A stretch of 64,000 nucleotides of DNA from Macrostomum lignano. Taxonomy: Eukaryota. Shown here piece by piece: positions 1-48,400 of the stretch (positions are counted from its first letter, which is position 1; every line of letters begins with the position of its first letter). The position numbers were made by a program, and so were the translations under genes. The notes under the pieces are model-generated. The model saw nothing but the letters and a program-made list of their open reading frames with translations, made no database searches and was not told the origin of the DNA. The stretch lies in NCBI GenBank assembly GCA_002269645.1, contig NIVC01001443.1, forward strand, positions 38,443 to 102,442, in the 5' to 3' direction.

Positions 1-433
1 CACGCGTTCGCCTTCTGCAGGAACCGGTCGCCCTCCTTGAACAAAAAGTGGTCGTCAATCAGCTGCTGCTGCACCTCCTTGGTCATCCCGGTCAGTGGGT
101 AATACGTGCCCTTCAGCTCGCCCGACATGTCCTTCAGCGTGCCCGACACGAGCTCCTCCAGCTGCTTGTAGTGCTCCTCCGTCATGTTCGGGTTGAACGG
201 GAACTGCTTCACCGACCTGCCGCACCGGATTCGGGTCGACACGACGTACTTTCCCTCCGGGTCCACGTCACCGAACTGGTTCGGGTCGCCCAGCGTGCAC
301 GGCGGGTGCCTGTCAGTCCGCTTGAAGCCTCCATGGTACTCCTCGATGATCGGGTCGAACAGGTCGGCGAACACCGTGTACGCCTCGGCGTCGGGAGCGT
401 AGACACCCACTCCGGAGTCGGGGTTCTCCACGC
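1..433 (-). CDS. Arginine kinase repeat exon C (partial, cut by window edge)
   Basis: Third copy, again offset by 1852 bp, same acceptor at 434. Confidence 0.88.
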
Positions 434-3400
434 CTGAAAACAGTAATTTGCTTCACTTAATCCAATGCTGTTACACCCTTTTGCAGCACCACAAAATACG
501 TACTACAGCGCCGTAAAACCACATGTGTCCCCTTCTGCTCAATTGCACCCTAACCAAAAACTCATACCCAACTAGCTCAGAAGAGACTGCTCAAAAGATT
601 ATACTTAAAGGGTTCAGAAACCGTAAAAATATGCTTCATCTGCATGCTCTTCATCAAGAATAACCTATCAGTAACAAGTAAATACATCAGGCTTATCAAC
701 AACTCCAGTACCAACCCTTATTTGTAAGTAAATCAATTTGTACTAAATGATACACCAGTGTGAATCGAAACAGATACACCAGTCTGAATCAAAACTGATA
801 CACCAGTCTGAATCAAAACTGATACACCAGTCTGAATCAAAACTGATACACCAGTCTGAATCAAAACCGATACACCAGTGTGAATCAAAACCGATACACC
901 AGAGTGAATCGAAACAGATACACCAGTCTGAATCAAAACTGACACACTAAACGGCACAATGACAACCAGGTACTTAAGGACCTTTAATTAGTTCAGTGAA
1001 ATTCCCCTTTAAGGTACAAAGAATGCATGCACAGTTGAATGAGAACCGTGGTCACTAATGTATTACTGCGTTAATTTTGTCAGCAAAAACAATATCCGTG
1101 CATTGTTGAAAATTGTAAGCAAATGCCGGTATGAATACTTCAGTTTTAGCAATGCGTACAATTCAATAAACACGTGAAAGAACCAAGAAATCAGAGTCTC
1201 CTCACCAGACTGGATCACGTCCTTCAGAGTTGATCCGAATGACGGAGTGCTCATGTTCTTGAGCTTGTCGACCACCTCCTTGGTGAGGTGCTTCTTCAGC
1301 AGTGAGTGGCAAGTGGCGTCGCCCTGCAGCTTCTGGTAGCCGGCTTCGATGTAGCTGACGACCTCGGTGTCGACGCCTTGCTCGAGCGCCTTCTCCATGC
1401 GGATGAGCTCGGCGATGCCGTGGTTCATCTTGCTGACAGCATCGAACTCGGTGAGACCCATGCGCTCCTTGTTGGAGATGTCGTAGAGTCCGCCGACAGC
1501 CTCGGAGTGCTCACCGGCTGAGCCGCGCACCTGCAGCTGGAACCGGTCGGCCACGCGCTGCAGAGCTTCCTGGCCTCCAGCGGCCAGCTTGGGCAGCTTG
1601 ATGTGCACCGAGGCGCGGATCGTGGTGCCCAGGTTCGTCGGGCAGAAGGTCAGGAAGCCGAGACGCTCGTCGTGGCTAAACGCCATCCGCTTCTCGATCT
1701 CGTTCACCGCGTTCACCAGCCGGCCGTAGACCTCCCGGATGCAGCCTCCCTTCTGCATCGAGATTATACGCATGTGGTCCTCCTCGCCGACCCACACTAG
1801 GAACGTCTTGCTGTCGTTGTGGTAGATGCCGCGACCCGTCGGCCAGTAGCGGCACGCGTTCGCCTTCTGCAGGAACCGGTCGCCCTCCTTGAACAAAAAG
1901 TGGTCGTCAATCAGCTGCTGCTGCACCTCCTTGGTCATCCCGGTCAGTGGGTAATACGTGCCCTTCAGCTCGCCCGACATGTCCTTCAGCGTGCCCGACA
2001 CGAGCTCCTCCAGCTGCTTGTAGTGCTCCTCCGTCATGTTCGGGTTGAACGGGAACTGCTTCACCGACCTGCCGCACCGGATTCGGGTCGACACGACGTA
2101 CTTTCCCTCCGGGTCCACGTCACCGAACTGGTTCGGGTCGCCCAGCGTGCACGGCGGGTGCCTGTCAGTCCGCTTGAAGCCTCCATGGTACTCCTCGATG
2201 ATCGGGTCGAACAGGTCGGCGAACACCGTGTACGCCTCGGCGTCGGGAGCGTAGACACCCACTCCGGAGTCGGGGTTCTCCACGCCTGAAAACAGTAATT
2301 TGCTTCACTTAATCCAATGCTGTTACACCCTTTTGCAGCACCACAAAATACGTACTACAGCGCCGTAAAACCACATGTGTCCCCTTCTGCTCAATTGCAC
2401 CCTAACCAAAAACTCATACCCAACTAGCTCAGAAGAGACTGCTCAAAAGATTATACTTAAAGGGTTCAGAAACCGTAAAAATATGCTTCATCTGCATGCT
2501 CTTCATCAAGAATAACCTATCAGTAACAAGTAAATACATCAGGCTTATCAACAACTCCAGTACCAACCCTTATTTGTAAGTAAATCAATTTGTACTAAAT
2601 GATACACCAGTGTGAATCGAAACAGATACACCAGTCTGAATCAAAACTGATACACCAGTCTGAATCAAAACTGATACACCAGTCTGAATCAAAACTGATA
2701 CACCAGTCTGAATCAAAACCGATACACCAGTGTGAATCAAAACCGATACACCAGAGTGAATCGAAACAGATACACCAGTCTGAATCAAAACTGACACACT
2801 AAACGGCACAATGACAACCAGGTACTTAAGGACCTTTAATTAGTTCAGTGAAATTCCCCTTTAAGGTACAAAGAATGCATGCACAGTTGAATGAGAACCG
2901 TGGTCACTAATGTATTACTGCGTTAATTTTGTCAGCAAAAACAATATCCGTGCATTGTTGAAAATTGTAAGCAAATGCCGGTATGAATACTTCAGTTTTA
3001 GCAATGCGTACAATTCAATAAACACGTGAAAGAACCAAGAAATCAGAGTCTCCTCACCAGACTGGATCACGTCCTTCAGAGTTGATCCGAATGACGGAGT
3101 GCTCATGTTCTTGAGCTTGTCGACCACCTCCTTGGTGAGGTGCTTCTTCAGCAGTGAGTGGCAAGTGGCGTCGCCCTGCAGCTTCTGGTAGCCGGCTTCG
3201 ATGTAGCTGACGACCTCGGTGTCGACGCCTTGCTCGAGCGCCTTCTCCATGCGGATGAGCTCGGCGATGCCGTGGTTCATCTTGCTGACAGCATCGAACT
3301 CGGTGAGACCCATGCGCTCCTTGTTGGAGATGTCGTAGAGTCCGCCGACAGCCTCGGAGTGCTCACCGGCTGAGCCGCGCACCTGCAGCTGGAACCGGTC

Positions 3401-4933
3401 GGCCACGCGCTGCAGAGCTTCCTGGCCTCCAGCGGCCAGCTTGGGCAGCTTGATGTGCACCGAGGCGCGGATCGTGGTGCCCAGGTTCGTCGGGCAGAAG
3501 GTCAGGAAGCCGAGACGCTCGTCGTGGCTAAACGCCATCCGCTTCTCGATCTCGTTCACCGCGTTCACCAGCCGGCCGTAGACCTCCCGGATGCAGCCTC
3601 CCTTCTGCATCGAGATTATACGCATGTGGTCCTCCTCGCCGACCCACACTAGGAACGTCTTGCTGTCGTTGTGGTAGATGCCGCGACCCGTCGGCCAGTA
3701 GCGGCACGCGTTCGCCTTCTGCAGGAACCGGTCGCCCTCCTTGAACAAAAAGTGGTCGTCAATCAGCTGCTGCTGCACCTCCTTGGTCATCCCGGTCAGT
3801 GGGTAATACGTGCCCTTCAGCTCGCCCGACATGTCCTTCAGCGTGCCCGACACGAGCTCCTCCAGCTGCTTGTAGTGCTCCTCCGTCATGTTCGGGTTGA
3901 ACGGGAACTGCTTCACCGACCTGCCGCACCGGATTCGGGTCGACACGACGTACTTTCCCTCCGGGTCCACGTCACCGAACTGGTTCGGGTCGCCCAGCGT
4001 GCACGGCGGGTGCCTGTCAGTCCGCTTGAAGCCTCCATGGTACTCCTCGATGATCGGGTCGAACAGGTCGGCGAACACCGTGTACGCCTCGGCGTCGGGA
4101 GCGTAGACACCCACTCCGGAGTCGGGGTTCTCCACGCCTGTCATAGTGTTTTGGGGTTTGTTTTGAATGCACACAACACTTCGTGATTGAGATTTAGTCT
4201 CTTGTGATTCCTATTACCTGACTGAATGACATCTTTTAGGGTGGATCCAAAAGTGGCCGTCTTCAGGCCCTTTAGTTTTTGCAGCACCTCGGCAGTAAGA
4301 TGTTTTTTTAGCAGGGACTTGCAGTTGGGATCGGATTGCAGCTTTTGGAATCCATCCTCGAGATAGGCAATGACGGCTGGGTCCACCTCGTTGCTCGCGC
4401 CGCTATGGGGGAGAATTTGTTTAATTTTTGCTTAGATATAGTTCGTTTAGTATAAAAATAAATTAATTAAACTGCATTACCTGTTATGATTCATGATTCA
4501 TGAAGGAATATTTTAGTTTATTTTGTGTGTAGTAGTATAAGTAGTAGTTCATGCATGCACTCAGATTTTTTGTTGTTTTGATTGTTTTGAAATTGGATTT
4601 TACGTTATTTATGGGAGCGGAACAGCCAGGATAGACAGATTAAAAAGCTTTCTAAAACAAAATGTCGAAGCAAGGTCAAAAGAATTGGTGTCTCTCATGC
4701 AGCTTCATTTGAAACTGGTTTAACGGAAATAATAGCATTCACACATTCATAGGAGAGGATTATGCAGTTAGTAGTTCCCCGTGACTTGACATGCAAGAGT
4801 TTTGAAAGCAACTGCAGCATGTCAGCACAATCTCCTTACTATCATTAGGGACTACTTACCCACTAACCGGTTGAGCATCTGCCGGTCTCGCCTGACCTCT
4901 TTGACCTCCTCGGCCTTTAAATAAGTTCCCCAT
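1..4933 (-). CDS. Multi-domain arginine kinase (phosphagen kinase), 3' end runs off the window start
   Basis: Exons in transcript order: 4933-4860 (MGNLFK..., donor GTAAGT, phase 2), 4402-4218 ([17 protein letters not shown]...KDVIQSG), 4137-3058, 2285-1206, 433-<1. All introns are GT-AG and phase-consistent. Motifs: [20 protein letters not shown] (guanidino-specificity region of arginine-kinase type), [46 protein letters not shown]. Confidence 0.95.
749..948. repeat. 24-bp minisatellite in arginine kinase intron (second copy at 2601-2800)
   Basis: About 8 copies of gatacaccagtctgaatcaaaact. Confidence 0.9.
1206..2285 (-). CDS. Arginine kinase repeat exon B (1080 nt), copy of exon A: end of domain 2 plus start of domain 3
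   Basis: Exactly 1852 bp from exon A; acceptor ...ttttcag at 2286, donor gtgagg at 1205; translation identical to exon A in the ORF track. Confidence 0.9.
3058..4137 (-). CDS. Arginine kinase repeat exon A (1080 nt, phase 1-1): C-terminal ~300 aa of domain 1 plus N-terminal ~60 aa of domain 2
   Basis: Acceptor ...atgacag at 4138, donor gtgagg at 3057; reads GVENPDSG...[18 protein letters not shown]...KDVIQSG. Confidence 0.93.
4481..4494 (-). CDS. Candidate alternative first coding exon of the arginine kinase (MNHN-S)
   Basis: ATG AAT CAT AAC AG|gtaatg: phase 2, in frame with the acceptor at 4403, giving a 78-nt intron similar to the next 80-nt intron. Confidence 0.45.
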
Positions 4934-8771: not shown

Positions 8772-9899
<1,128 letters not shown>

Positions 9900-12684: not shown

Positions 12685-15600
12685 ATGCGCGGTCCACTAT
12701 CGCTGCCACTACCCAGGCGACTGCGCCAACTGGTGCTGGCCAATTTTGCCTGTCCTGGCAATCGCACTGGCCACCTCGCTCGCCTGGCATTTCGCCTCGC
12801 CTCCCATGAGCAGCAGCACGCCTCCCGCCTGTGCGCCGAGGCTTGCATTGATTTGTTGCCAGCAGCAACACCCGCCTCGCCGGCGACCTGCCTGGAGGTT
12901 GGCTTTGGCGCCGGGCACGCGCTGGCCGAGCTGCGACGACTTCGGCCAGTTGGCGAGCTTCGCCTTCTGGGCGTCGACGCGAGCAGCTTGGCTTTGAAGC
13001 TGGCAACGGCGCAGCTTGGCGGCGAGCCCGACAATGCAAAGCTGTTCCACTGCCAGGCCGACGACCTGCTGCCTGTGGCCACCGGCAGCTGCAACCTGGT
13101 TGCTCAGGTAGCTTAGCCTAGGTTGGCTTCGGCTGCCGATTCTTCAGTGTCTGCTCCCCCGGGTCTTCAGGTGTTGCTACCCCTTTATAGATTTTTTCAG
13201 GCGCTGCTATCTTTAGTTCCTCAGGTGCTATTTGCTATTGCCCCCCGTTCTTCAGGTGCTTTTGCCCCCCGGTTCTTTATGTGCTTTTGCCCACCGGTTC
13301 TTTATGTGCATTTGCCCCCCGGTTCTTTATGTGCTTTTGCCCCCCGGTTCTTTATGTGCTTTTGCCCCCCGGTTCTTTATGTGCATTTGCCCCCCGGTTC
13401 TTTATGTGCATTTGCCCCCGGTTCTTTATGTGCATTTGCCCCCCGGTTCTTTATGTGCTTTTGCCCCCCCCCCCCGGTTCTTTATGTGCTTTTGCCCACC
13501 GGTTCTTTATGTGCATTTGCCCCCGGTTCTTTATGTGCTTTTGCCCCCCGGTTCTTTATGTGCTTTTGCCCCCGGTTCTTTATGTGCTTTTGCCCCCCGG
13601 TTCTTTATGTGCATTTGCCCCCCCCCGGTTCTTTATGTGCTTTTGCCCCCCGGTTCTTTATGTGCATTTGCCCACCGGTTCTTTATGTGCATTTGCCCAC
13701 CGGTTCTTTATGTGCATTTGCCCCCCGGTTCTTTATGTGCATTTGCCCCCCGGTTCTTTATGTGCATTTGCCCCCCCCCGGTTCTTTATGTGCATTTGCC
13801 CCCGGTTCTTTATGTGCATTTGCCCCCCCCGGTTCTTTATGTGCTTTTGCCCCCCGGTTCTTTATGTGCTTTTGCCCCCCCCCGGTTCTTTATGTGCATT
13901 TGCCCCCCGGTTCTTTATGTGCATTTGCCCACCGGTTCTTTATGTGCATTTGCCCCCCGGTTCTTTATGTGCATTTGCCCCCCGGTTCTTTATGTGCTTT
14001 TGCCTCCAGTTCTTTATGTGCATTTGCCCCCCCCCGGTTCTTTATGTGCTTTTGCCCCCCCCCCGGTTCTTTATGTGCTTTTGCCCCCCCGGTTCTTTAT
14101 GTGCTTTTGCCCACCGGTTCTTTATGTGCTTTTGCCCCCCGGTTCTTTATGTGCTTTTGCCCCCTCCGGTTCTTTATGTGCATTTGCCCCCGGTTCTTTA
14201 TGTGCATTTGCCCCCGGTTCTTTATGTGCATTTGCCCCCCGGTTCTTTATGTGCTTTTGCCCCCGGTTCTTTATGTGCATTTGCCCCCCGGTTCTTTATG
14301 TGCATTTGCCCCCGGTTCTTTATGTGCATTTGCCCCCCCCCCGGTTCTTTATGTGCTTTTGCCCACCGGTTCTTTATGTGCATTTGCCCCCCCCCGGTTC
14401 TTTATGTGCATTTGCCCCCCCGGTTCTTTATGTGCTTTTGCCCCCCCCGGTTCTTTATGTGCTTTTGCCCCCCCCCGGTTCTTTATGTGCTTTTGCCCCC
14501 CCCCCGGTTCTTTATGTGCTTTTGCCCACCGGTTCTTTATGTGCTTTTGCCCCCGGTTCTTTATGTGCTTTTGCCCCCCCCCGGTTCTTTATGTGCATTT
14601 GCCCCCGGTTCTTTATGTGCATTTGCCCCCCGGTTCTTTATGTGCATTTGCCCCCCGGTTCTTTATGTGCATTTGCCCCCCCCTGGTTCTTTATGTGCTT
14701 TTGCCCCCCCCGGTTCTTTATGTGCATTTGCCCCCGGTTCTTTATGTGCATTTGCCCCCGGTTCTTTATGTGCATTTGCCCCCCGGTTCTTTATGTGCTT
14801 TTGCCCCCGGTTCTTTATGTGCATTTGCCCCCGGTTCTTTATGTGCTTTTGCCCCCCGGTTCTTTATGTGCATTTGCCCCCCCCGGTTCTTTATGTGCTT
14901 TTGCCCCCCCCGGTTCTTTATGTGCATTTGCCCCCCGGTTCTTTATGTGCTTTTGCCCCCCGGTTCTTTATGTGCATTTGCCCCCCGGTTCTTTATGTGC
15001 TTTTGCCCCCCGGTTCTTTATGTGCATTTGCCCCCCGGTTCTTTATGTGCTTTTGCCCCCCGGTTCTTTATGTGCTTTTGCCCCCCGGTTCTTTATGTGC
15101 TTTTGCCCCCCCCGGTTCTTTATGTGCATTTGCCCCCCGGTTCTTTATGTGCTTTTGCCCCCCCCCGGTTCTTTATGTGCATTTGCCCCCCCCCCCCGGT
15201 TCTTTATGTGCTTTTGCCCCCCCCCGGTTCTTTATGTGCATTTGCCCCCCGGTTCTTTATGTGCTTTTGCCCCCCCCCCGGTTCTTTATGTGCATTTGCC
15301 CCCCGGTTCTTTATGTGCTTTTGCCCCCCGGTTCTTTATGTGCTTTTGCCCCCCCCCCGGTTCTTTATGTGCATTTGCCCCCGGTTCTTTATGTGCATTT
15401 GCCCCCCGGTTCTTTATGTGCTTTTGCCCCCCGGTTCTTTATGTGCTTTTGCCCCCCCCCCCGGTTCTTTATGTGCATTTGCCCCCGGTTCTTTATGTGC
15501 TTTTGCCCCCCCGGTTCTTTATGTGCTTTTGCCCCCCCCGGTTCTTTATGTGCATTTGCCCCCCGGTTCTTTATGTGCTTTTGCCCCCCCCGGTTCTTTA

Positions 15601-17994
15601 TGTGCATTTGCCCCCGGTTCTTTATGTGCTTTTGCCCCCCCCCCGGTTCTTTATGTGCTTTTGCCCCCCGGTTCTTTATGTGCTTTTGCCCCCGGTTCTT
15701 TATGTGCATTTGCCCCCCGGTTCTTTATGTGCTTTTGCCCCCGGTTCTTTATGTGCTTTTGCCCCCCCCCGGTTCTTTATGTGCATTTGCCCCCCGGTTC
15801 TTTATGTGCTTTTGCCCCCCCCCCGGTTCTTTATGTGCATTTGCCCCCGGTTCTTTATGTGCTTTTGCCCCCGGTTCTTTATGTGCTTTTGCCCCCCCGG
15901 TTCTTTATGTGCTTTTGCCCCCCGGTTCTTTATGTGCATTTGCCCCCCGGTTCTTTATGTGCTTTTGCCCCCCGGTTCTTTATGTGCTTTTGCCCCCCCC
16001 CCCCGGTTCTTTATGTGCTTTTGCCCCCCCCCCGGTTCTTTATGTGCTTTTGCCCCCCCCCCGGTTCTTTATGTGCATTTGCCCCCCGGTTCTTTATGTG
16101 CTTTTGCCCCCCCCCCGGTTCTTTATGTGCATTTGCCCCCGGTTCTTTATGTGCTTTTGCCCCCGGTTCTTTATGTGCTTTTGCCCCCCCCGGTTCTTTA
16201 TGTGCATTTGCCCCCGGTTCTTTATGTGCTTTTGCCCCCGGTTCTTTATGTGCTTTTGCCCCCCCCCCGGTTCTTTATGTGCTTTTGCCCCCGGTTCTTT
16301 ATGTGCTTTTGCCCCCCGGTTCTTTATGTGCATTTGCCCCCCGGTTCTTTATGTGCTTTTGCCCCCCCCGGTTCTTTATGTGCTTTTGCCCCCCCCCGGT
16401 TCTTTATGTGCATTTGCCCCCCGGTTCTTTATGTGCTTTTGCCCCCCCCCGGTTCTTTATGTGCATTTGCCCCCGGTTCTTTATGTGCTTTTGCCCCCGG
16501 TTCTTTATGTGCTTTTGCCCCCCCCGGTTCTTTATGTGCATTTGCCCCCGGTTCTTTATGTGCTTTTGCCCCCCCCCGGTTCTTTATGTGCATTTGCCCC
16601 CGGTTCTTTATGTGCTTTTGCCCCCCGGTTCTTTATGTGCTTTTGCCCCCCCGGTTCTTTATGTGCTTTTGCCCCCCGGTTCTTTATGTGCATTTGCCCC
16701 CCGGTTCTTTATGTGCTTTTGCCCCCCGGTTCTTTATGTGCTTTTGCCCCCCCCCGGTTCTTTATGTGCTTTTGCCCCCCCCCCGGTTCTTTATGTGCAT
16801 TTGCCCCCGGTTCTTTATGTGCTTTTGCCCCCCCGGTTCTTTATGTGCTTTTGCCCCCCCCGGTTCTTTATGTGCTTTTGCCCCCCGGTTCTTTATGTGC
16901 TTTTGCCCCCCCGGTTCTTCATGTGCATTTGCCCCCGATTCTTTATGTGCATTTGCCCCCCGGTTCTTTATGTGCTTTTGCCCCCCGGTTCTTTATGTGC
17001 ATTTGCCCCCCGGTTCTTTATGTGCATTTGCCCCCCGGTTCTTTATGTGCATTTGCCCCCCGGTTCTTTATGTGCATTTGCCCCCCGGTTCTTTATGTGC
17101 TTTTGCCCCCGGTTCTTTATGTGCATTTGCCCCCCGGTTCTTTATGTGCATTTGCCCCCCGGTTCTTTATGTGCTTTTGCCCCCCGGTTCTTTATGTGCT
17201 TTTGCCCCCCCCGGTTCTTTATGTGCTTTTGCCCCCCCCCGGTTCTTTATGTGCTTTTGCCCCCCCCGGTTCTTTATGTGCTTTTGCCCCCCAGTTGTTC
17301 AGGTGCTACTGCCCTCAGTTGCTAAGGTGCTACTGACCCCAGTTGCTAAGGTGCTACTGACCCCAGTTGTTCAGGTGCTACTGCCCTCAGTTGCTAAGGT
17401 GCTACTGACCCCAGTTGCTAAGGTGCTACTGACCCCAGTTGCTAAGGTGCTACTGACCCCAGTTGTTTCAGGTGCTACTGCCCTCAGTTGCTAAGGTGCT
17501 ACTGACCCCAGTTGCTAAGGTGCTGCTGACCCCAGTTGCTAAGGTGCTACTGACCCCAGTTGTTCAGGTGCTACTGCCCTCAGTTGCTAAGGTGCCACTG
17601 CCCCCAGTTGCTAAGGTGCTGCTGCCCCCAGTTGCTAAGGTGGTGCTGCCCCCCGTCCATCAGGGCTTGCTAAACCTAACCCTGCAAGCTATGGTTCCCC
17701 AACGCCCCACCGGCCCCGCCCCAATTCCAGGTGAACTGCTTCGGCGTGCTGCCCCGCGCTCAGTTGGCCGGGGCCTGCAGAGAAGCCTACCGGGTGCTCC
17801 GTCCGGACGGCCGGCTGGTGGCGGTGGCCGACTGCTGGCTGACCAGCCGGTTGGTCGCGGAGCTCGGCCGGCCGGATCTGCTGGACAGCCTGGCTGCCCT
17901 GGAGGCGGCCGGCTTCTCCAAGTTGAAGCACAGTCGGCGCCAGTGCTGCCTGACTGGCCGGCCGCTGCACCTGGTCACGGCTGAGGTCCGCTGA
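12685..17994 (+). CDS. Class I SAM-dependent methyltransferase, 2 exons, about 228 aa
   Basis: Exon 1 12685-13107 (motif I LEVGFGAG, motif II LLGVDAS; donor gtagct, phase 0). Exon 2 17731-17994 (acceptor ccaattccag; REAYRVLRPDGRL post-motif typical of Methyltransf_11-like enzymes). Substrate unknown. Confidence 0.85.
13150..17655. repeat. Intronic minisatellite: GGTTCTTTATGTGC(T/A)TTTG plus a variable C-run, followed by a 24-bp sub-array
   Basis: Core array about 13245-17290; 24-mer ccccagttgctaaggtgctactga at about 17290-17655. Confidence 0.97.
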
Positions 17995-25304: not shown

Positions 25305-28050
25305 CCCCTGAGAAAAGACACCTGGGACAATAGGACACCTGGGACAATAGGACACCTGAGACAAAAGGATGCCTGGGACAATAGGATACCTGGGACAATA
25401 GGATATCCTGGGACAATAGGACACCTGGGACAATAGGACACCTGGGACAATAGGACGCCTGGGACAATAAGACACCTGGGACAATAGGACACCTGGGACA
25501 ATAAGACACCTGGGACAATAAGACACCTGGGACAATAAGACACCTGGGACAATAAGACACCTGGGACAATAAGACACCTGGGACAATAAGACACCTGGGA
25601 CAATAGGACACCTGGGACAATAGGACACCTGGGACAATAAGACACCTGGGACAATAAGACACCTGGGACAATAGGACACCTGGGACAATAGGACACCTGG
25701 GACAATAAGACACCTGGGACAATAAGACACCTGGGACAATAAGACACCTGGGACAATAAGACACCTGGGACAATAAGAAACCTGGGACAATAAGAAACCT
25801 GGGACAATAGAACACCTGGGACAATAAGACACCTGGGACAATAAAACACCTGGCACAATAAGACACCTGGAACAAAAGACACCTGGGGCAATAGGACACC
25901 TGGGACAATAAGACACCTGGGACAATAAGACACCTGGGACAATAAGACACCTAGGACAATAAGACACCTGGGACAATAAGACACCTGGGACAATAGGACA
26001 CCTGGGACAATAGGACACCTGGGACAATAAGACACCTGGGACAATAAGACACCTGGGACAATAAGACACCTGGGACAATAGGGCACCTGGGACAATAAGA
26101 CACATGGGACAATAGGACCCTGGGACAATAAGACACATGGGACAATAGGACACCAGGGACAATAGGACACCAGGGACAATAGGACACCTGGGACAATAAG
26201 ATACCTGGGACAATAAGATACCTGGAAAAATGAGACAACTGGGACAATAAGACACCTGGGACAATAGGACACCCGGGACAATGAGACACCTGGGACAATA
26301 GGACACCAGGGACAATGAGACACCTGGGACAATAGGACAGCTTGGACAATAGGACACCTGGGACAATAGGACACCTGGGACAATAAGATACCTGGGACAA
26401 TAAGATACCTGGAAAAATGAGACAACTGGGACAATAAGACACCCGGGACAATGAGACACCTGGGACAATAGGACAGCTGGGACAATAAGACAGCTGGGAC
26501 AATAAGACACCTGGGACAATAGGACACCCGGGACAATGAGACACCTGGGACAATAGGACAGCTGGGACAATAGGACACCTGGGACAATAGGACACCTGGG
26601 ACAATAGGACAGCTGGGACAATAGGACACCTGGGACAGTAGGACACCTGGGACAGTAGGACACCTGGGACAAAAAGACACCTGGAACAATAGGACACCTG
26701 GAACAATAGGAAACCTGGGACAATAGGACACCTGGGACAATAGGACAGCTGGGACAATAGGACACCTGGGACAATAGGACAGCTGGGACAGTAGGACACC
26801 TGGGACAAAAAGACACCTGGAACAATAGGACACCTGGGACAAAAAGACACCTGAAACAATAGGACACCTGGGACAAAAAGACACCTGGAACAATAGGACA
26901 CCTGGGACAAAAAGACACCTGGGACAATAAGACACCTGGGACAAAAAGACACCTGGAACAATAGGACACCTGGGACAAAAAGACACCTGGAACAATAGGA
27001 CACCAGGGACAATGAGACACCTGGGACAATAGGACAGCTTGGACAATAGGACACCTGGGACAATAGGACACCTGGGACAATAAGATACCTGGGACAATAA
27101 GATACCTGGAAAAATGAGACAACTGGGACAATAAGACACCCGGGACAATGAGACACCTGGGACAATAGGACAGCTGGGACAATAAGACAGCTGGGACAAT
27201 AAGACACCTGGGACAATAGGACACCCGGGACAATGAGACACCTGGGACAATAGGACAGCTGGGACAATAGGACACCTGGGACAATAGGACACCTGGGACA
27301 ATAGGACAGCTGGGACAATAGGACACCTGGGACAGTAGGACACCTGGGACAGTAGGACACCTGGGACAAAAAGACACCTGGAACAATAGGACACCTGGGA
27401 CAAAAAGACACCTGGAACAATAGGACACCTGGGACAAAAAGACACCTGGAACAATAGGAAACCTGGGACAATAGGACACCTGGGACAATAGGACAGCTGG
27501 GACAATAGGACACCTGGGACAATAGGACAGCTGGGACAGTAGGACACCTGGGACAAAAAGACACCTGGAACAATAGGACACCTGGGACAAAAAGACACCT
27601 GGAACAATAGGACACCTGGAACAATAGGAAACCTGGGACAATAGGACACCTGGGACAATAGGACAGCTGGGACAATAGGACACCTGGGACAATAGGACAG
27701 CTGGGACAGTAGGACACCTGGGACAAAAAGACACCTGGAACAATAGGACACCTGGGACAAAAAGACACCTGAAACAATAGGACACCTGGGACAAAAAGAC
27801 ACCTGGAACAATAGGACACCTGGGACAAAAAGACACCTGGGACAATAAGACACCTGGGACAAAAAGACACCTGGAACAATAGGACACCTGGGACAAAAAG
27901 ACACCTGGAACAATAGGACACCTGGGACAAAAAGACACCTGGAACAATAGGAAACCTGGGACAAAAAGACACCTGGAACAATAGGAAACCTGGGACAAAT
28001 ATACACTTGGGACAAAAATACACTTGGGACAATAAGACACCTGGGACAAC
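25305..28050. repeat. 17-bp satellite, about 160 copies, with higher-order structure
   Basis: Unit ctgggacaata(g/a)gacac with recurrent variants. Confidence 0.97.
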
Positions 28051-28679
28051 AGGAAACTATAACAACTGATGACGGCTACGAGGGCACCAAGACACTTGGG
28101 TAGACAGGTCGCTAGACTGGGATACTGGGAGGCAAAGCAACTCAGTCAGAAGAGCTCTAACCTACCGCTAGCAGAATTGTGCAGCTCGGTGCTGCCTGCG
28201 AGCCGTCAACTTCGTCTGCTATTTCTGCTGGCAGCTGTCGCCTATGCCGCCACCTTGTCGCTGCTGATTCTGCATAGCGCTCTCAACGGCACCAACGGTA
28301 GTCGACGAAATTTGGTTGCTAACCTGCCGCTCCAGAGGGACGTGGCCTTGAAGAAGAGTCCGATCGCTCAGCAGCGACGGCTGAGTAGCGGTTTTTGGAT
28401 AAATAAAAGGCGCATTGCCTTACAAAACTGGCTCGCAGGGCAGCGGACTCGTCAGTGGTCTTCCGTAAAGCTGGCCAGCTCGACTTTGGCCACATTAAGC
28501 ACAGTCGGCTCGACAGGCAGGCCAGCAAGGAGACTACAGATTGAAGCAACTGAGAATGCTTGAAGAGACCACTGAAGGCGTGTAGGGAGATGGTAGATGG
28601 TGACGTGGATACGTGATGTGAGAGAGATAAGAGAGTAAGGATGAGGGATGGGGAGAGGGATTGAGGTGGAGGTGTGCGG

Positions 28680-31102: not shown

Positions 31103-32132
31103 TCACTTGTAGCATCGAGAGGCCACGGCCTGGGTGCACTCCGCTGGCTTCGCGCCCTTGTAGGTGGAGCAGACTAGCTGGAGAAGGTTGGCCTCGGCCT
31201 GCTTCTGGATATCCTCGTTGTGCACCTGCGGGTGGGAGGTGGATGTTAGGTATACGGAGGTGAACTCTACGGCCATTCCTATTGGATGAAACAATTGTCA
31301 CGTGACTTCTATGAGCCAATAACGTCACACAAACCGATAGACGCTATTGATTGGCCGAGACAACAGTCACGTGACAATTGTTTCGTCCAATAGTGGCTCG
31401 TGTGACGTGTATACAGTGCCAATAGAAACGACAGAGTGAAATCGCTTTCAAACTACTCACCCCGTTGATGGTGACCCAGGGCACGTATTGAAGCGGCGGA
31501 TTGAGAGTTCGAGTTCGCTCGGCCATCCAGTGCTCGAGCTTGTCGCCCCACTCGTTGTGAGAGCAAGTGTTGATATGGTCCCAGCTGATGTTGAGCGCCA
31601 CCGCGCACTGCTCCGCCACCTGGAGCATGTTGTCGGCGGTGGAGCGCTCCTCCACGCAGGACAGGTAGGCCATCCAGCGGTCTGGCTTGTCATTCAGCAG
31701 TCCAATGGCGCAGGTCTCAACTTGGTTGCCCTCGCACTCAGCTGGGCCGTGCTGGCATTCGAAGATCCATCGGTGGCCCTTGATAGTCTCCTTGGCGTTG
31801 CCGTAGGGCACCACGTCGACCATCATGATGCCGGAGGCGTTCAACTTGCGCCAGGCGGGGTACAGCTGCTTATTAAAGAAGGCCTTGCAATCGGGGCAGA
31901 GGGACTCCATGTAAATGGTCACCTCCACCGGCTCGGCGGCCGTCCTCTGCACTCGTTTAGCAGATCGGCACTGGCTAGAAACTCCGCACGCTTCGGCGAC
32001 ATCGTCAGAGCCGCACCAGACTGACGGCGACTGGTTGCAATCGCGGTTGGGATTGCTGTTAAAACGCAGAACAGTGCTAGAGGCAAAAGCTGTGCAGGTG
32101 CATAGCATCAGAGCTGTCACTAACAGTTGCAT
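31103..32132 (-). CDS. ifi30: Gamma-interferon-inducible lysosomal thiol reductase (GILT/IFI30-like), 2 exons, about 264 aa
   Basis: Exon 1 32132-31461 (signal peptide, ESLCPDC active site, signature CQHGPAECEGNQVETC, YVPWVTING; donor gtgagt). Exon 2 31225-31103 (LVCSTY...C...CYK*). Confidence 0.93.
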
Positions 32133-39400: not shown

Positions 39401-42400
39401 CTATTATAACGCCTACATCTCGACTAGCACTCTTCGAATGTTTGCCAGCTAGCCGGATGTGTTTGCCAGCTAGCCGGATGTGTTTGCCAGCTAGCCGGAT
39501 GTGTTTGCCAGCTAGCCGGATGTGTTTGCCAGCTAGCCGGATGTGTTTGCCAGCTAGCCGGATGTGTTTGCCAGCTAGCCGGATGTGTTTGCCAGCTAGC
39601 CGGATGTTTTGCCAGCTAGCCGGATGTTTTGCCAGCTAGCCGGATGTTTTGCCAGCTAGCCGGATGTTTTGCCAGTTAGCCGGATGTTTTGCCAGCTAGC
39701 CGGATGTTTTGCCAGCTAGCTTCTTGACTACTATGACTACTTCATGCCCCAAACCCAACCCTGAACGCTCACTCCGCCATCCAACAGACAGCAACTTCGT
39801 GTTAGGCAACGCGCAGGCGAAGGACAGGCCCATTGTGTACTGCTCCGACGGATTCTGCGAGCTGACTGGCTTCGCCCGGGCCCAGGTGATGTCCAAGCCC
39901 TGCGCCTGCCGGTTCTTGTGGGGCCAGGCCACCGAGCCCACCGAGCGGCAGAAGATCGAGGACAGCTTGCTAGCGCAGAGGGAGCTGCAAACTGAGGTCG
40001 TCTTCTACAAGAAGACTGGTGAGCTCAACTGCTTTACGAATGTCTGCTGCGGGAGTCTCACAGCTTTTTGACTGGCAAGGGGCGGTGAATCCTGGTCGAG
40101 GATTAACTGTTTCGTTACTAGAGTGGGTGACCGGAGTCAGGAGTCCTGAAAAGTTTCTTTTAAACAAATAACAACAACAAAATACGCGACCCCGCATGTA
40201 CAGTCACAGCTAGAGCAGGGCGCGTCAGATGGCGCGCCGCAGAGCCTGGGAGCGAACAAAGTCCGCTCCATTGGCAGTGTCGGGCGCCCCAGCGTCGCAC
40301 AGCAGGCAGTCCACGTATCGACGGGTTCGGGCCTGACCCCGCCTGAACGGACAGGTTGGGGGCAGTAGCCCTCGGCCCGGATCACGTGACCCGCCAGTTG
40401 AGGTCGCCACCGGCGCAGAATGATGGACGGGCGCTGCAGCTTGGCCCGATCGTACAGGGCCTCGGTCCCAACGCTCTCGTCAGCTCGAAAGGCCGCACGG
40501 AGCGCCGAGTCCAGCTGCCGCTCTAGCGTAGCCGTCAGCGTCCACGTCTCGGCGTTGTATAGCAGGACGGTTTCGACCACCGCCTGCCACAGCCGAGCCC
40601 TCTGGCGGTCGGGCAGCGCTTCGGACTGGAGGACGGCTCGGATCGAACGAAAGGCCGCCCAGGCAAGTCCTCTGCGCCGCCGGAGGTCCTCTTCCACGTG
40701 GGGCACCAGACCGCCGAAGTAGGTGAACCGCTGGCAGCGTGCGAGCCTGGTCGTCTGCCCGTCTGCGCCGCGGCACGTCAGGTCCGCTGGGATGTCGGCC
40801 GGCACAGTCAGCACCTCGGTCTTCAGCGTGTTGACGATCAGACCGACGCTCGATGCCACCTCGACCAGCTTGTCGATCTGGCGCTGGCGCCTTCAACGGA
40901 CGAGGACAGGAGGGCGAGGTCGTCGGCGTAGCCAAGCACGCTTAGGCGCTTTTCGCCGTGGCGGTGACCGATGCGTCTGCGCAGCAGGAAGCCGTCATTA
41001 GCCGAGGGGAGTGCGGTCCGAAGCACCGAGTCCAGCAGCAGCACGAAGAGGAACGGCGCTAGCGTGTCGCCCTGCAGAACTCCTGATGAAGTATCGAACA
41101 GGTCAGACAGGCCGTCCGCCGTCACCACAGCAGCTCGAGTATCGCAATACAGCGCCATGACAGCGTCGATTAGCTGCTGGGGTACCCGGTAGGCTTGAAG
41201 GACAAAGGGAAGCGCAGCTCTCAACACCGAATCCAACGCCTTTCGAAAGTCAACGAAGACAATGATCAGCGTAGACTGGCGGATGCGCGCCTCCTCGATG
41301 ACACGGCGGAGTGCGAGGATCTGTGTCACTGTACCGCGTTGCGGCCGGAATCCGTTCTGCTCGTACCGCAGTTACGGGTCCAGCACCGACTGCAGACGAT
41401 CGAGCAGCAGCCGGTTGAAGAGCTTCGCGGTGCAGGACAACATCAGCGAGATCCCGCGGTGGTCTTCCTTCCGCGTTGTCCCTGCCTTCTTCGGGATCGG
41501 CACGATGTGCCCGACGGTCCACTCGGTAGGCGCAGGAGCGCCGGCGAGCACGCGGTTCATGACGCCTGTGACCTGGGAGGCCACACAGCGGAGCCGCAGC
41601 GCTTCGACCGGGACTTCGTCGGGGCCGAGCGCCTTGCCGCCTGATGTTTTCCGAGCGAACAGCACAACGTCCTCCGTGGTGACTGGGCTGGTGCAGAAGT
41701 CCTCCTCAGCTGGGAGCGGCGTGTCCAGTGAGAGCGCAAAGCTGGCGGGCAGCGGCGACGCGGGCGCGTTCACGATGCCGGCGAAGAAGTCGCGCAATTC
41801 ATTCGCGACTTTTAAACATAACGATAAAAAAGTTAGGGCCGCTGTACACTCCTGTGTGAGTGCGTGCCTGTGCGTCTGACTGCGTACGTTTCCGCGCGCT
41901 TGTTTGCCTGCTTAGGGGAGTCGGCGGAATGGGCAGTAATGCCTCTCGCCAGTTGTGCGACAATCCCGGTTAAAGTGCGCCAGGGTGCATACAGCCCCCT
42001 GCGTCTAATAAAAAAATAAAAATGTTATTGATGTGTCTCGGAATGGAAGATTCCTGTTCCTGCAGGGTGGGCTGTGAGGGGGTGTTGGGCTGTAGTGTAT
42101 GTCATGCTCTGTGAAATTTATCGAGCCCAGATAGCGAGACCAGTTTCAAAATCCCTCAACCTGCCGGACACACCCTCGTGTGTGTCCTATTTTGGAACCA
42201 CGAGCGCAGATATGCGAGCGGAAAGTGGCCATTTGAGCAGCTGGCCGCGGCCCTGGAGATTTTCTTGGCACCAGCCGCGGCTTCCGTCCCCACCTGGCCG
42301 CTCGAATTTGCAACCTTGATCTCTTCGGCCCTAAGCTGGCAGCGTTTATCGCTTTATCGCTTGAAAAAATATATTACCTCCCAGGCGGTGCTTAAGGGAG

Positions 42401-45400
42401 CTCAGCGACCGGCATTCTATCGCCGATATCGGACTTCTCCCTGGCGCACTCGGGCGGTTTCCTATTGCGCACCCGAGGCCTGGGGGCGGCCGAGACTCTG
42501 TCCCGCTTCGGTGCCAGTCGCCCGCCGCCAACGGCTCGGCCTGCAAAGCCAGGCGCAACAAAAAGCTGAAACCCAACTATTGCACTGAATGACCTCGACA
42601 GAGCTCCAATTTTGCTTTCCTTGGATTTGAGTCACAGAAAACGTCCTTACGAACTCAAGTGCATTATTGTGATTCATTATTTCAGTATGACGAACTGTTT
42701 GGCGTCAAATGAATATCAATTTGTTTGGATAATTTCTGAAACTTTTTTTACACTGAGGCAACCCAGTCCATTAAATTTTAAATTCTAGACTACCACTCCA
42801 CTCCAGGAGCATCCACCCCACTCTGGAATCATCCAACCCTCCACTCCAGTAGAATCGACCCCACTAAAGTAGCATCCACCCCACTAAAGTAGCATCCACC
42901 CCACTAAAGTAGCATCCACCCCACTAAAGTAGCATCCACCCCACTAAAGTAGCATTCACCCCACTAAAGTAGCATTCACCCCACTAAAGTAGCATTCACC
43001 CCACTAAAGTAGCATCCACCCCACTAAAGTAGCATCCACCCCACTAAAGTAGCATCCACCCCACTAAAGTAGCATCCACCCCACTAAAGTAGCATCCACC
43101 CCACTAAAGTAGCATCCACCCCACTCCGGAACCATCCACCCCACTCCGGAACCATCCACCCCACTCCGGAATCATCCACCCCACTCCGGAATCATCCACC
43201 CCACTCCGGAATCATCCACCCCACTCCGGAATTATCCACCCCACTCCGGAATCATCCACCCTACTCCGGAATCATCCAACCCACTCCGGAATCATCCACC
43301 CCACTCCGGAATCATTCACCCCACTCCGGAATCATCCACCCCATTCCGGAATCGTCCACCCCACTCCAGAATCATTCACCCCACTCCGGAATCATCCACC
43401 CCACTCCGGAATCATCCACCCCACTCCAGAATCATTAATCATCCACCCACTCTAGAATCATCCACCCACTCTGGAATCATCCACCCCACTCTGGAATCAT
43501 CCACCCCACTCCGGAATCATCTACCCCACTCCGGAACCATCCACCCCACTCCGGAATCATCCACCCCAATCCAGAATCATTAATCATCCACCCACTCTAG
43601 AATCATCCACCCACTCTGGAATCATCCACCCCACTCTGGAATCATCCACCCCACTCCGGAATCATTCACCCCACTCCGGAATCATCCACCCCACTCCGGA
43701 ATCATCCACCCCACTCCGGAATCATCCACCCCACTCCGGAATCATCCACCCTACTCCAGAATCATTAATCATCCACCCACTCTAGAATCATCCACCCCAC
43801 TCTGGAATCATCCACCCCACTCTGGAATCATCCACCCCACTCCGGAATCATTCACCCCACTCCGGAATCATCCACCCCACTCCGGAATCATCCACCCCAC
43901 TCCGGAATCATCCACCCCACTCCGGAATCATCCACCCTACTCCAGAATCATTAATCATCCACCCACTCTAGAATCATCCACCCCACTCTGGAATCATCCA
44001 CCCCACTCTGGAATCATCCACCCCACTCCGGAATCATCTAACCCACTCCGGAACCATCCACCCCACTCCGGAATCATCCACCCCACTCCAGAATCATTAA
44101 TCATCCACCCACTCTAGAATCATCCACCCTACTCCGGAATCATCCACCCCACTCCAGAATCATTAATCATCCACCCACTCTAGAATCATCCACCCACTCT
44201 GGAATCATCCACCCCACTCTGGAATCATCCACCCCACTCCGGAATCATCTACCCCACTCCGGAACCATCCACCCCACTCCGGAATCATCCACCCCAATCC
44301 AGAATCATTAATCATCCACCCACTCTAGAATCATCCACCCACTCTGGAATCATCCACCCCACTCTGGAATCATCCACCCCACTCCGGAATCATCTACCCC
44401 ACTCCGGAACCATCCACCCCACTCCGGAATCATCCACCCCACTCCAGAATCATTAATCATCCACCCACTCTAGAATCATCCACCCCACTCCGGAATCATC
44501 CACCCCACTCCGAAATCATCCACCCCACTCCGGAATCATCCACCCCACTCCGGAATCATTCACCCCACTCCGGAATCATTCACCCCACTCCAGAATCATC
44601 CACCCCACTCCAGAATCATCCACCCCACTCCGGAATCATTCACCCCACTCCGAAATCATCCACCCCACTCCGGAATCATCCACCCCACTCCAGAATCATC
44701 CACCCCACTCCAGAATCATCCACCCCACTCTAGAATTATCCACCCCACTCCGGAATCATCCACCCCACTCCGGAATCATCCACCCCACTCCGGAATCATC
44801 CACCCCACTCCGGAATCATCCAATCCACTCCGTGAGCAGATTTCTTGACATTTGATTTTCGCTTGCCATTTAGGATCCCAGTTCGTTTGTCTGCTCGACA
44901 TTGTACCGATAAAGAATGAGAAGGGCGACGTGGTCTTGTTCCTGGCCTCGCACAAAGACATCACTAAGCAGAAAAAAGGTGAGTGTTAAATTGACCGTGA
45001 TCATGAAAACGGCAGCGAGCACTTGTGACCTGTGATTGTGACTAGATGTATTCGTGACCGGATTAATTAACGATGTATAAAAAAGTACATTACTTTCTAT
45101 CATACTATAGGGCAGACGGAAGGACAAAGGGCCAAGTCTCCACTCCCTTACCTACCTTCAAAGCTTGAATAAGCAGATTTCCCGGTGACGTTGCCCTCAA
45201 ACTGCTGGTGGGCTGTTTATTTACATTTGGCCTGCGCTGCAGACACGATTTGTCAGAGGGGATCAGAGGAAAGACCGTTTTTGGGGAAATCCATCCCCTC
45301 TAGTGGGCAAAGGGTTCTGATCGCTCTATGACGATTTTACATTAATTAGCCGTGACTGAACTCTGTGACTAAGGCTGTGACACAATGTGAACTCTGTGAC

Positions 45401-48400
45401 ACAGTGAACTCAGGTTGTGACTGCGTGACACAGTGAACTCAGATTGCGACTGTGTGACACAGTGAACTCAGGTTGTGACTGTGTGACACAGTGAACTCAG
45501 GTTGTGACAGTGTGACACAGTGAACTCAGGCTGTGACTGCGTGACGCAGTGAACAAGTAACAAGCTGTTCCATCGATCAGCAGGTGCTAAAGTTATATTA
45601 ATTATAGCAATCAGGAGCAAGTACCGTATATCTCTATAATTGCCGTCACACAAATCATTCCTTCACACCAGCCTGTAAAGACTTCGCCTCCGGGGTTCCC
45701 CCCGTCCGGCCCCAGCTCCATCAAACGGAGTTTCCTGCTCCACTTAAAAATCTTATCTTATTTGTTAAGCAAAATTATTTGTTGTTATGCAGTCGCTCAT
45801 TCAACGCTCTGAGTTGCCAACAGCAGTAGATATGCGGCAGAGCGGATACAATGAACCAATCAGGGCATTGCATGTACACTATGCATGCACTCTTTAAACG
45901 TTTAGCGCCAACTCGGCCGGACCTCGGCAACGAAGCAGCTCAGACGGCAGGGCAGCAGCAGCAGCCGACCGCGCCGCTTGCAGTTGCCGAGGACGCCAAG
46001 CAGGCCGACCTGGACAGCAGCAGCAGCGGCAGCAACGGCAGCAGCGGCGGCGGCGGCGGCGGCGGCGTCAACTGCAAGGACAAAAACACAGCCAGCTCGG
46101 AATCAGCATCCGGCTCGGACTCCTCCAGCGGTGAGGACTGCGCAGGCGGCAGCGACAATGGCGGCGAGGAGTGCAGTTCGACCTTCAAGTACCAGCGCCC
46201 GCGGTCCAGGGCGGTGCTGTACCATCTCAGCGGCCAGTTCGACTCCAGGAACAAGAGCAAGCCGTTTAGCCAGCTCAATAAGGTGATGGCCAAGGCTGGG
46301 CCTTTTGACTGGGGCAACCACAGCTGGCATCCTGTACCATAGCTGCCATCCTGTACCATAGCTGCCATCCTGTACCATAGCTGCCATCCTGTACCACAGC
46401 TGCCATCCTGTACCATAGCTGCCATCCTGTACCATAGCTGCCATCCTGTACCATAGCTGCCGTCCTTATCCATGCTAATATTGAACTCATGCTCAAACTA
46501 TGTCCACTTACTTGACTTCGAGCAGTTGCTAGCACTCAGAGCCTGAATTCACACTCACTGCTCACTTTACTCATGCAGCCTCTAAAGATGTAGTCTAAGC
46601 GTTGGAAGAAATACGGGGCAAAATCCCCAATGTTGCAAAAAATCCCCCTGCCCCAGATTCACAGCCTGGGTGGCGGCAGCGCCATGCCCGAGTACAAGGT
46701 GCAGGAGGTTAAGAAGTCGCGCTGCATCCTGCTGCACTACGGGCTGCTGAAGATCAGCTGGGACTGGCTGATCCTGCTGTTCACCTTCTACATCGCCATC
46801 ATGGTGCCCTACAATGCGGCCAACAGCAACGGCCGCGCCAGGAAGGCCGGCACAGCCGCCATTGAGGACGCCGGGGTGGTCATCGACCTGCTGGTCGAGG
46901 TCGTCTTCATTGCCGGCAAGTTGAAGTTGTGTGCGAACAGACCGAGTGTACATGCGGTGTGCGCATTCCCCGATGTGTACATTCAGTTTACACCCCCGAG
47001 TGTACATGCGGTGTGCGCATTCCCCGATGTGTACATTCAATTTACACCCCCGAGTGTACATGCGGTGCGCATTCCCCGATACGTACATTCAATTTACACC
47101 CGAGTGTACATGCAGTGTGTGCATTCCCCGGTGTGTACATTCAATTTACACCCGAGTGTACATGCAGTGTGTGCATTCCCCGGTGTGTACATTCAATTTA
47201 CACCCGAGTGTACATGCAGTGTGTGCATTCCCCGGTGTGTACATTCAATTTACACCCGAGTGTACATGCAGTGTGTGCATTCCCTGGTGTGTAAATTATA
47301 GTAAAGTAAAGTACATTTGCTTTACAATTAAATAAGCGTAGACTAAAAGTACTCGTACATGGGTTAGTCTATTAAAATATACTACATGCAATTTAGCAGG
47401 TTAAATTCATAGCAAGTTAGGATCGGCAAGTATATAATATTAATATTATTATTAGAGTGAATTTGCAGCCAAGCTTTCCATAGCCGCTCAGCCCAGCTCA
47501 GTCTTCAATTAGCAGCTACTCACAGACTAACAAAAAATCATATTGCGACGGGACCCCAAATGCGCGGGAGCAGGCAAAACTGCAATCGGCAGCTGTCTTG
47601 TCAGCTAATCCACTTTCGCTTAATCACCCACGACATGGGGAGGGAAAATCCGGCCCAGCTTGTGGATTCTGAGGGATAATCGCGCTTCTTTCTCCACTGA
47701 ATCGGGAAAGAACAGGACAGATCGCTTGTAGCCCTTGCTGTGAGAGCCTTTCGCTCAGTTTTCACTGGTAGAATTATGCGCAAACTACTCTACTCATATT
47801 ATGTCATAAGTAGTTCAGCCGAATTTATTTTAATTTTTTATTTACAATAATTAATGAAATTTGCTAACCAACTCGGCAAACAGACATCTGCATCAACTTC
47901 CGTACTACATTTGTGAGCAAAGGCGGACAAGTGGTGTACTGTCAGCGGCTCATCGCCATCAACTACACAAAAACTTGGTTCTTCCTCGACCTGTTGGCTG
48001 CCGTGCCCTTCGACATGATTATCATAATTAGCAAAGCGGTCAGCTCCAACCTGGCCACGGAAATGGTGAGCGTTTCATTCTACTCATCAACACCTTAACT
48101 CCATTCTAGCTCCATCCTAGCTCCATTCTGGGTTCATCCTAGCTCCATCCTAGCTCCATCCTAGCTCCATCCTAGCTCCATCCTAGCTCCATCCTAGCTC
48201 CATCCTAGTTCCATCCTAGCTCCATCCTAGCTCCATCCTAGCTCCATCCTAGCTCCATCCTAGCTCCATCCTAGCTCCATCCTAGCTCCATCCTAGCTCC
48301 CCCAGCTAGCTCCATCCTAGCTCCATCCTAGCTCCATCCTAGCTCCATCCTAGCTCCATCCTAGCTCCATCCTAGCTCCATCCTAGCTCCATCCTAGCTC

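Follow-up and report, generated by a model that had tools for sequence, protein, structure and literature searches.

Phosphagen kinases that carry more than one catalytic domain in a single polypeptide are established from several sources: two-domain arginine kinases (AKs) in sea anemone and bivalves, two-domain taurocyamine kinases (TKs) in trematodes, and a three-domain creatine kinase (CK) in flagella. Some AK-like two-domain enzymes are in fact taurocyamine kinases, and the flagellar CK of sea urchin is N-myristoylated. Outside this family, the kringle IV-2 region of human LPA is built from near-identical tandem units of one or more exons plus intron, each of which adds one domain, and it varies between individuals. 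In the genes for the two-domain AKs of anemone and clam, a "bridge intron" reportedly separates the two domains, as Suzuki and Yamamoto are said to have described in 2000.

Here we describe a locus of the flatworm Macrostomum lignano in which the domain-adding unit is a single exon with its intron. It lies at the start of a stretch of 64,000 nucleotides (nt) from contig NIVC01001443.1 (assembly GCA_002269645.1, positions 38,443 to 102,442 of the forward strand), hereafter the window, in which positions are counted from the first letter. On balance, and with only modest confidence, we regard this minus-strand sequence (hereafter window AK) as a genuine M. lignano AK gene that encodes a poly-domain enzyme from a real array of exon cassettes.

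A repeated exon cassette encoding arginine kinase domains

Self-comparison of the window revealed a mismatch-free tandem repeat with a period of 1852 nt that spans positions 1-4140 in 2.24 units and contains no Ns: positions 1-2288 equal 1853-4140, and positions 1-436 equal 3705-4140, with 0 mismatches in either case. A periodicity this exact across 4.1 kb cannot have arisen by chance. Read on the minus strand, each unit is made up of a 1080-nt exon and a 772-nt intron (Table 1). The identity between units ends at 4140, at the "cag" of a splice acceptor 3 nt upstream of the exon, and the first mismatch beyond the repeat sits in the unique 80-nt intron. At its other side the array is cut mid-unit by the start of the window, with 433 nt of a third exon copy visible; because the window begins inside a unit, the array may continue upstream of position 1. 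The cassette intron itself contains a 24-nt minisatellite, TGATACACCAGTCTGAATCAAAAC, in 8.3 copies with 92% matches, and the order of its variants is identical in both intron copies.

The repeated exon is symmetric (phase 1-1). It encodes the C-terminal part of one kinase domain, 302 amino acids (aa) running from VENPDSG to IRMEKALEQ, and continues directly into the 58-aa N-terminal part of the next, which ends in DVIQSG (the split glycine codon counted). The 1080 nt amount to 360 codons, which is one AK domain, and each tandem genomic unit of 1852 nt therefore adds one domain in frame. The domain junction, ...MEKALEQ/GVDTEVV..., lies inside the exon and is free of stop codons, Met and intergenic DNA, and no unit has a promoter-proximal start exon of its own. 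The exon is bounded by an acceptor of ttttcag/GC (tatgacag/GC for the first copy) and a donor of TCT G/gtgagg. An earlier, sequence-only reading of this DNA had described a 1080-nt phase 1-1 exon that fuses about 300 aa of one domain to about 60 aa of the next, had stated that one unit adds one domain in frame, and had set a boundary at 4402; the first two statements agree with what we found, and 4402 proved to be the true start of the unique N-terminal exon (exon B).

Table 1. Predicted structure of the window AK gene, listed in the order of transcription
Feature	Window positions	Strand	Details
Candidate exon A, putative first coding exon	4860..4933	-	ATG at 4933; 24 residues + GG; donor GG/gtaagt, phase 2
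Intron A-B	4403..4859	-	457 nt; GT..AG; GC 0.34
Exon B, unique	4218..4402	-	185 nt; N-part of AK domain 1, ends DVIQSG; acceptor ccccatag/C; donor TCA G/gtaata, phase 1
Intron 1	4138..4217	-	80 nt; site and phase match the sole intron (78 nt) of the single-domain paralogue
Repeated exon, copy 1	3058..4137	-	1080 nt, phase 1-1; domain 1 C-part (302 aa), then domain 2 N-part (58 aa); no stop
Cassette intron, copy 1	2286..3057	-	772 nt; gtgagg...ttttcag; GC 0.38; minisatellite at 2600-2799
Repeated exon, copy 2 (identical)	1206..2285	-	C-part of domain 2 + N-part of domain 3
Cassette intron, copy 2 (identical)	434..1205	-	Minisatellite at 748-947
Third exon copy, first 433 nt only	1..433	-	144 aa of C-part of domain 3; further cassette or terminal exon

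Conceptual splicing of the visible part yields a product of 950 aa with three stretches that match PF02807 (ATP-gua_PtransN, E = 3e-99) and three that match PF00217 (ATP-gua_Ptrans, E = 3.5e-159). Two AK domains are complete within the window, and the third is represented by 202 aa (the 58-aa N-part and 144 aa of the C-part), with the frame open across two junctions. At the level of the genomic sequence and of conceptual splicing, at least two complete kinase domains accordingly stand in one uninterrupted frame. The sequence-only reading had counted three domains, with a fourth to be opened if the third exon copy is complete. Three N-type and three C-type Pfam stretches bear out the count, with the qualification that the third domain is present in the window for 202 aa only and that the third copy could diverge after nucleotide 433.

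Several lines of evidence assign these domains to the AKs. The phosphagen-kinase active-site signature C-P-x(0,1)-[ST]-N-[IL]-G-T is present, together with the motifs STRxRxGRS, EEDHxRIISM, IRASVH and VRGxxGEH, and each domain has one copy of the catalytic motifs, spaced as expected: CPTNLGT, the signature with the reactive Cys; DSGVG, which belongs to the specificity loop; and VRGSAGEH. The guanidino-specificity region is of the AK type, and a 16-residue motif is present. Comparison of one reconstructed domain with crystallised single-domain arthropod AKs gave approximately 550-570 bits (E ~1e-163 to 1e-171), against approximately 250-300 bits for creatine, lombricine and glycocyamine kinases, and the sequence is thus closer to proven AKs than to the other classes. 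The best arthropod AK proteins in a large collection were approximately 70% identical to window AK, and the top PDB matches overall were the two-domain Anthopleura AK 4RF6 and the two-domain Schistosoma TK 4WO8, with two matched stretches each. From the last helix of one domain to the first conserved helix of the next there are approximately 22 residues, similar to the spacing in the solved two-domain AK. The domains look functional, with no hint of decay, and are predicted to interconvert arginine + ATP and phosphoarginine + ADP; the protein would then act as a poly-enzyme for arginine/phosphoarginine energy buffering.

At its 5' end the gene calls for a start exon, since exon B has no in-frame Met. 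Exon A is our candidate: it is the sole nearby exon with an in-frame ATG, and its consensus donor has exactly the phase that exon B requires. The N-terminus that it would supply, MGNLFKG, is reminiscent of the myristoylated flagellar CK; it has Gly2, and its Lys at position 6 is off the usual myristoylation motif; N-myristoylation of this candidate terminus, and a role in cilia or sperm, would be speculation. Another source of a start codon was considered and rejected. The M. lignano spliced leader, CGGTCTCTTACTGCGAAGACTCAATTTATTGCATG, ends in ATG (PMC8629364), and if it were joined at the exon B acceptor at 4402 this ATG would be out of the AK frame.

GC content at third codon positions (GC3) differs between the exons of this one gene: the repeated exon has 0.89, unique exon B, to which it is homologous, 0.59, and candidate exon A 0.33. 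We examined GC-biased gene conversion within the array as a cause of the value of 0.89 and consider it unlikely, because the co-repeated intron is not GC-enriched (GC 0.38, against 0.34-0.375 in the unique introns). Selection on codon usage in a gene that is highly expressed, with a 5' ramp of low GC, is our simplest guess. Two antisense open reading frames (ORFs) on the plus strand, at 1819-2289 and 3671-4186, had no Pfam match, and we read them as mirror ORFs, opposite a gene with high GC3.

Comparison with other multi-domain kinases

Two-domain enzymes of known structure, such as the AK of Anthopleura japonicus (4RF6) and the TK of Schistosoma mansoni (4WO8), resemble window AK in having complete domains head to tail, a short natural linker and catalytic motifs in both domains. 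An origin by gene duplication and fusion would be a further likeness to two-domain AKs and TKs in general. These enzymes consist of two diverged domains, whereas window AK has at least three of identical sequence, and 4RF6 and 4WO8 are only about 45-50% identical to window AK, which belongs to the arthropod-like branch of AKs. Nor does window AK have a bridge intron between its domains: its introns are at DVIQSG/ only, and the domain junction falls within an exon. The three-domain flagellar CK of sea-urchin sperm and similar three-domain proteins of the CK type, such as P0219 (1118 aa), share with window AK the arrangement of three contiguous phosphagen-kinase domains in one polypeptide, and a shuttle of energy along cilia or flagella is a conceivable parallel. 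They differ in being of the creatine-kinase type (RGTGGVDTA motif), and their own domains are 72-74% identical to each other.

To survey multi-domain AKs more widely, we used the single-domain M. lignano AK P0030 (BOX15_Mlig021515g1) as a query against 1.84 billion representative proteins and then looked up names and sequences. Two predicted AK-type proteins of animals have three domains. That of Lineus longissimus (XP_064653124, P0217) is 1060 aa long, with domains approximately 65% identical to each other. That of the prawn Macrobrachium nipponense (XP_064105360) is 2589 aa long and combines ankyrin repeats with 3 AK domains, of which domains 2 and 3 are 96% identical, a value that indicates a recent internal duplication. 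AK-type proteins with 4-5 domains are present in protists (Mallomonas, Polykrikos). The Lineus gene resembles window AK in that an intron directly follows the conserved ...SG in its domain 1; it differs in being an old triplication spread over many exons, whereas window AK has one exon and one intron per unit and units that are 100% identical. The prawn protein differs in its large non-kinase flanks, and both it and the Lineus protein are uncharacterised predictions.

The expectation of the sequence-only reading that a metazoan AK with three or more domains would be unusual is therefore borne out as regards rarity, and the Lineus and Macrobrachium entries set its limit: such proteins are rare and uncharacterised, but not unprecedented. 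Its four-domain Paramecium AK found no confirmation: the literature accessible to us speaks of four arginine kinases of P. tetraurelia as separate genes, of which the statement looks like a misreading. For M. lignano, a search of the literature for AK studies gave one passing mention of an expressed sequence tag.

Two observations made in the course of the survey concern the other proteins themselves. Lineus P0217 ends in CTLL, a CaaX-type prenylation box, which hints at membrane anchoring of the nemertean multi-domain kinase. In the ostensible two-domain AK model of Cyprideis torosa (P0001, 692 aa) the halves are 97.6% identical, an internal start (MVDSAV) is present and domain 1 lacks its C-terminal helix; annotation seems to have merged two tandem genes in this model, which calls for caution in counting multi-domain AKs from predictions.

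What sets window AK apart from these known cases is that its units are 100% identical, that each domain corresponds to one symmetric exon with the domain junction inside it, and that the same genome retains a gene of the single-domain progenitor type. In gene architecture LPA kringle IV-2 is comparable, since there too a genomic unit adds a domain in frame and unequal recombination is the expected driver. It belongs to an unrelated family, and in window AK the unit comprises an entire enzyme domain, divided by circular permutation.

Origin of the cassette and reality of the array

The closest AK proteins to window AK that we found, in a search that covered 5.8 billion proteins, were P0030, which is 83-85% identical (85% over the C-part), and a Logan transcript, P0037 from run SRR7428099, which is 84-87% identical. 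A lineage-specific motif of 17 residues is common to window AK, P0030 and P0037. P0030 differs from window AK in its single domain. It is encoded at other loci, flanked by tetraspanin genes, in two exons with their own start and stop, and its sole intron of 78 nt follows ...DVIQSG in phase 1, the same site and phase as the introns of window AK. The N-part encoded by exon B is 75% identical to that of P0030; against its counterpart within the cassette it reaches only 63% (nt) and 67% (aa). Intron 1, ahead of the first cassette, bears no relation to the cassette intron, which has a good acceptor of its own.

These relationships suggest an origin in two steps. In the first, a two-exon, single-domain AK gene present in two tandem copies would have undergone head-to-tail fusion, at a cost of about nine N-terminal residues and the stop codon. 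The result would be a composite exon in which 302 aa from the C-terminus of one domain run on into 58 aa from the N-terminus of its successor. The DNA of the two N-parts has since diverged by 37%, which makes this fusion an old event. The second step would be very recent, or homogenisation may still be going on: the composite exon would have recombined unequally, through homology, with a following exon that begins with the same sequence, and the 1080-nt exon would thereby have been amplified together with the 772-nt intron. The repeat starts exactly where the homology between successive exons starts, as fits unequal homologous exchange or gene conversion and not random breakpoints. A loop in an assembly graph would give the same boundary, and the boundary is therefore not unique to unequal exchange. 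The sequence-only reading had proposed a two-domain ancestor with an intron at DVIQSG in both domains, followed by unequal crossing-over; the site and phase of the P0030 intron, together with an array boundary at the edge of exon homology, support fusion followed by unequal crossing-over.

If the array is transcribed, every cassette intron offers the same donor and acceptor, and by default all copies would be included, as is expected for a symmetric phase 1-1 exon with identical good splice sites. The product would be one chain of at least three complete AK domains of approximately 40 kDa each, joined by approximately 20 residues of natural N-terminal sequence. Should the third copy be a full cassette, it would open a fourth domain; if instead its sequence turns into a terminal exon beyond nucleotide 433, the protein would have three. 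Skipping of the symmetric exon would also give in-frame products, with fewer domains.

Elsewhere the window holds cleanly assembled minisatellite arrays of up to 4 kb and a TAG run of 560 nt; that such arrays were resolved points to a long-read assembly, and an array of a few units with a 1.85-kb period would normally be spanned by single long reads, which supports a real array. Moreover, the second cassette is complete: it has a domain junction of its own and is accompanied by another full intron. The three-domain AK entries of the nemertean Lineus and of the prawn supply a precedent.

Other observations weigh against this conclusion. All copies are 100% identical, even in the mutable 24-nt minisatellite of the intron, a pattern that fits a very young duplication and also an effect of assembly or polishing. 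The array runs off the start of the window, so that the number of units, the terminal exon and the stop codon lie beyond the visible part. The collection of 5.8 billion proteins contains no M. lignano model for window AK, though other M. lignano models are there; an exact-sequence look-up of the 406-aa cassette ORF gave no match; and no transcript record was found, with 0 matches to the 36-nt spliced cassette-to-cassette junction in metagenome and metatranscriptome contigs. Finally, the copy number of a 21-nt array is about 14 in the window (39435-39720) against about 29 in the Mlig_3_7 contig NIVC01001373.1 (1190-1806 of the excerpt that was compared), which means that array lengths in the M. 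lignano genome are either unstable or inconsistently assembled.

Much of this would be explained if the assembly had over-expanded a two-domain AK gene consisting of exon B, one 1080-nt exon, the 772-nt intron and a terminal exon, an alternative that deserves serious attention although we consider it rather unlikely. The first several hundred bases of the terminal exon would equal the cassette exon, and either the assembler would have looped one or more extra times or the contig would end in an unresolved repeat. The perfect identity down to the intron minisatellite, the beginning of the window inside the array, an array boundary at the limit of exon homology such as a graph loop would produce, the discordant copy numbers of the 21-nt array and the missing deposited protein model are all in keeping with such an error. 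Yet the window resolves harder arrays than this one, among them the 4-kb minisatellites and the TAG run, as a long-read assembly would, and assemblers probably tend to collapse units and not to add them. A full second cassette with its junction and a second intron is also more than a partial overlap would leave. Even on these terms the gene would remain a fused two-domain AK, with internally identical halves.

The array could also be real without giving rise to a poly-domain enzyme, the locus being silent or a young pseudogene, or cassette skipping yielding mainly one- and two-domain proteins. We judge this improbable. It would account for the failure to find a transcript or protein record for window AK, it gains from a first coding exon that is so far a candidate and from phase 1-1 exons that can be skipped without breaking the frame, and the genome is extremely rich in tandem arrays. 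All visible copies, however, retain an open frame, consensus splice sites and all catalytic motifs, and a GC3 of 0.89 in the cassette exon against a GC of 0.38 in the intron amounts to a strong coding-type codon bias, which would not be expected in decaying sequence. The missing model is weak evidence in any case, since short-read transcript assemblies cannot represent an internal perfect repeat of 1080 nt. A cluster of separate single-domain AK genes misread as one, for which merged tandem AK genes elsewhere such as Cyprideis torosa P0001 set a precedent, is highly improbable given that the frame runs on through IRMEKALEQ/GVDTEVV without stop, Met or intergenic DNA and that no unit has a start exon.

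Our preferred reading of a genuine poly-domain AK gene admits a stronger form, which we offer as doubtful: that there are at least four cassettes, in a number that varies among M. lignano lines or haplotypes, which would make this a modular AK of at least 160 kDa whose domain number is set by unequal recombination. Such a protein might be the enzyme counterpart of the LPA kringle repeat, perhaps tethered in cilia or sperm as a phosphoarginine shuttle.

Surrounding sequence and significance of the locus

Beyond the AK gene, the window contains a gene for a GILT-family thiol reductase (31344-32132, minus strand) that is 100% identical to M. lignano BOX15_Mlig022516g1 and has a saposin-A-type N-terminal motif. 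This identity ties the DNA to M. lignano and, together with P0030 and P0037 as the closest AKs, speaks against an insect or mosquito AK, which the short introns and arthropod-like sequence might suggest. The last approximately 35 aa of its ORF look like intron read-through, and an exact-sequence look-up of the ORF that included this read-through gave no match. BOX15_Mlig022516g1 sits on Mlig_3_7 contig NIVC01001373.1, which aligns to the window in reverse at approximately 96-98% identity with indels. We therefore take the window and the contig to be the same locus from two assemblies, haplotypes or homeologues; M. lignano is a recent hidden polyploid (PMC10468722; PMC8629364). On that contig the 10-kb flank of the GILT gene, which is anchored at 93,072, ends about 16 kb short of the AK gene, with no other annotated gene in between.

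Over a quarter of the window consists of tandem repeats. At 8985-9545, approximately 187 copies of TAG form a (TAG)n microsatellite, which generates long pseudo-ORFs of poly-Leu/Val/Thr/Ser/Tyr on both strands. Long minisatellite arrays occupy 13229-17653, 25317-28054, 42793-44832, 48099-49349, 50498-51796 and 54681-55751, with about 15 more elsewhere; their periods range from 11 to 52 nt, they reach 4.1 kb and approximately 160 copies, and they produce kilobase-long spurious ORFs in several frames. Three other regions show traces of coding sequence. ORFs with RVT_1 reverse-transcriptase matches lie in two overlapping frames at 40137-41329 (minus strand) within a GC-rich (0.62) block, probably a frameshifted fragment of a LINE-type retroelement. 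Exons of a voltage-gated (KCNH/EAG-like) ion channel at 46630-47301 and approximately 50300-50569 (plus strand) have a weak Ion_trans match and are interrupted or flanked by minisatellites that read through as ORF. An ORF at 12685-13116 (plus strand) carries the S-adenosylmethionine (SAM)-dependent methyltransferase motif EVGFGAG (Methyltransf_25/11, E ~1e-5); it lies directly upstream of a 4-kb minisatellite with a 25-nt period and is possibly the first exon of a gene.

If the copy number at the AK locus turned out to be an over-count of the assembly, the locus would still serve as a useful warning for the annotation of a repeat-rich, recently duplicated genome, and the two-domain fusion would still be new for M. 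lignano. If both the array and a full-length transcript are real, window AK would be the first flatworm phosphagen kinase with at least three domains and among very few metazoan examples of the AK type. It would also be the only example caught while it expands: its units are identical, each domain has one symmetric exon, and a single-domain paralogue persists that shows the starting structure. It would hence be a clean natural case of the growth of a repeated-domain enzyme by duplication of an exon cassette. M. lignano is tractable for transgenesis, and the effect of added kinase domains on activity, cooperativity and localisation would be open to test in the animal itself.

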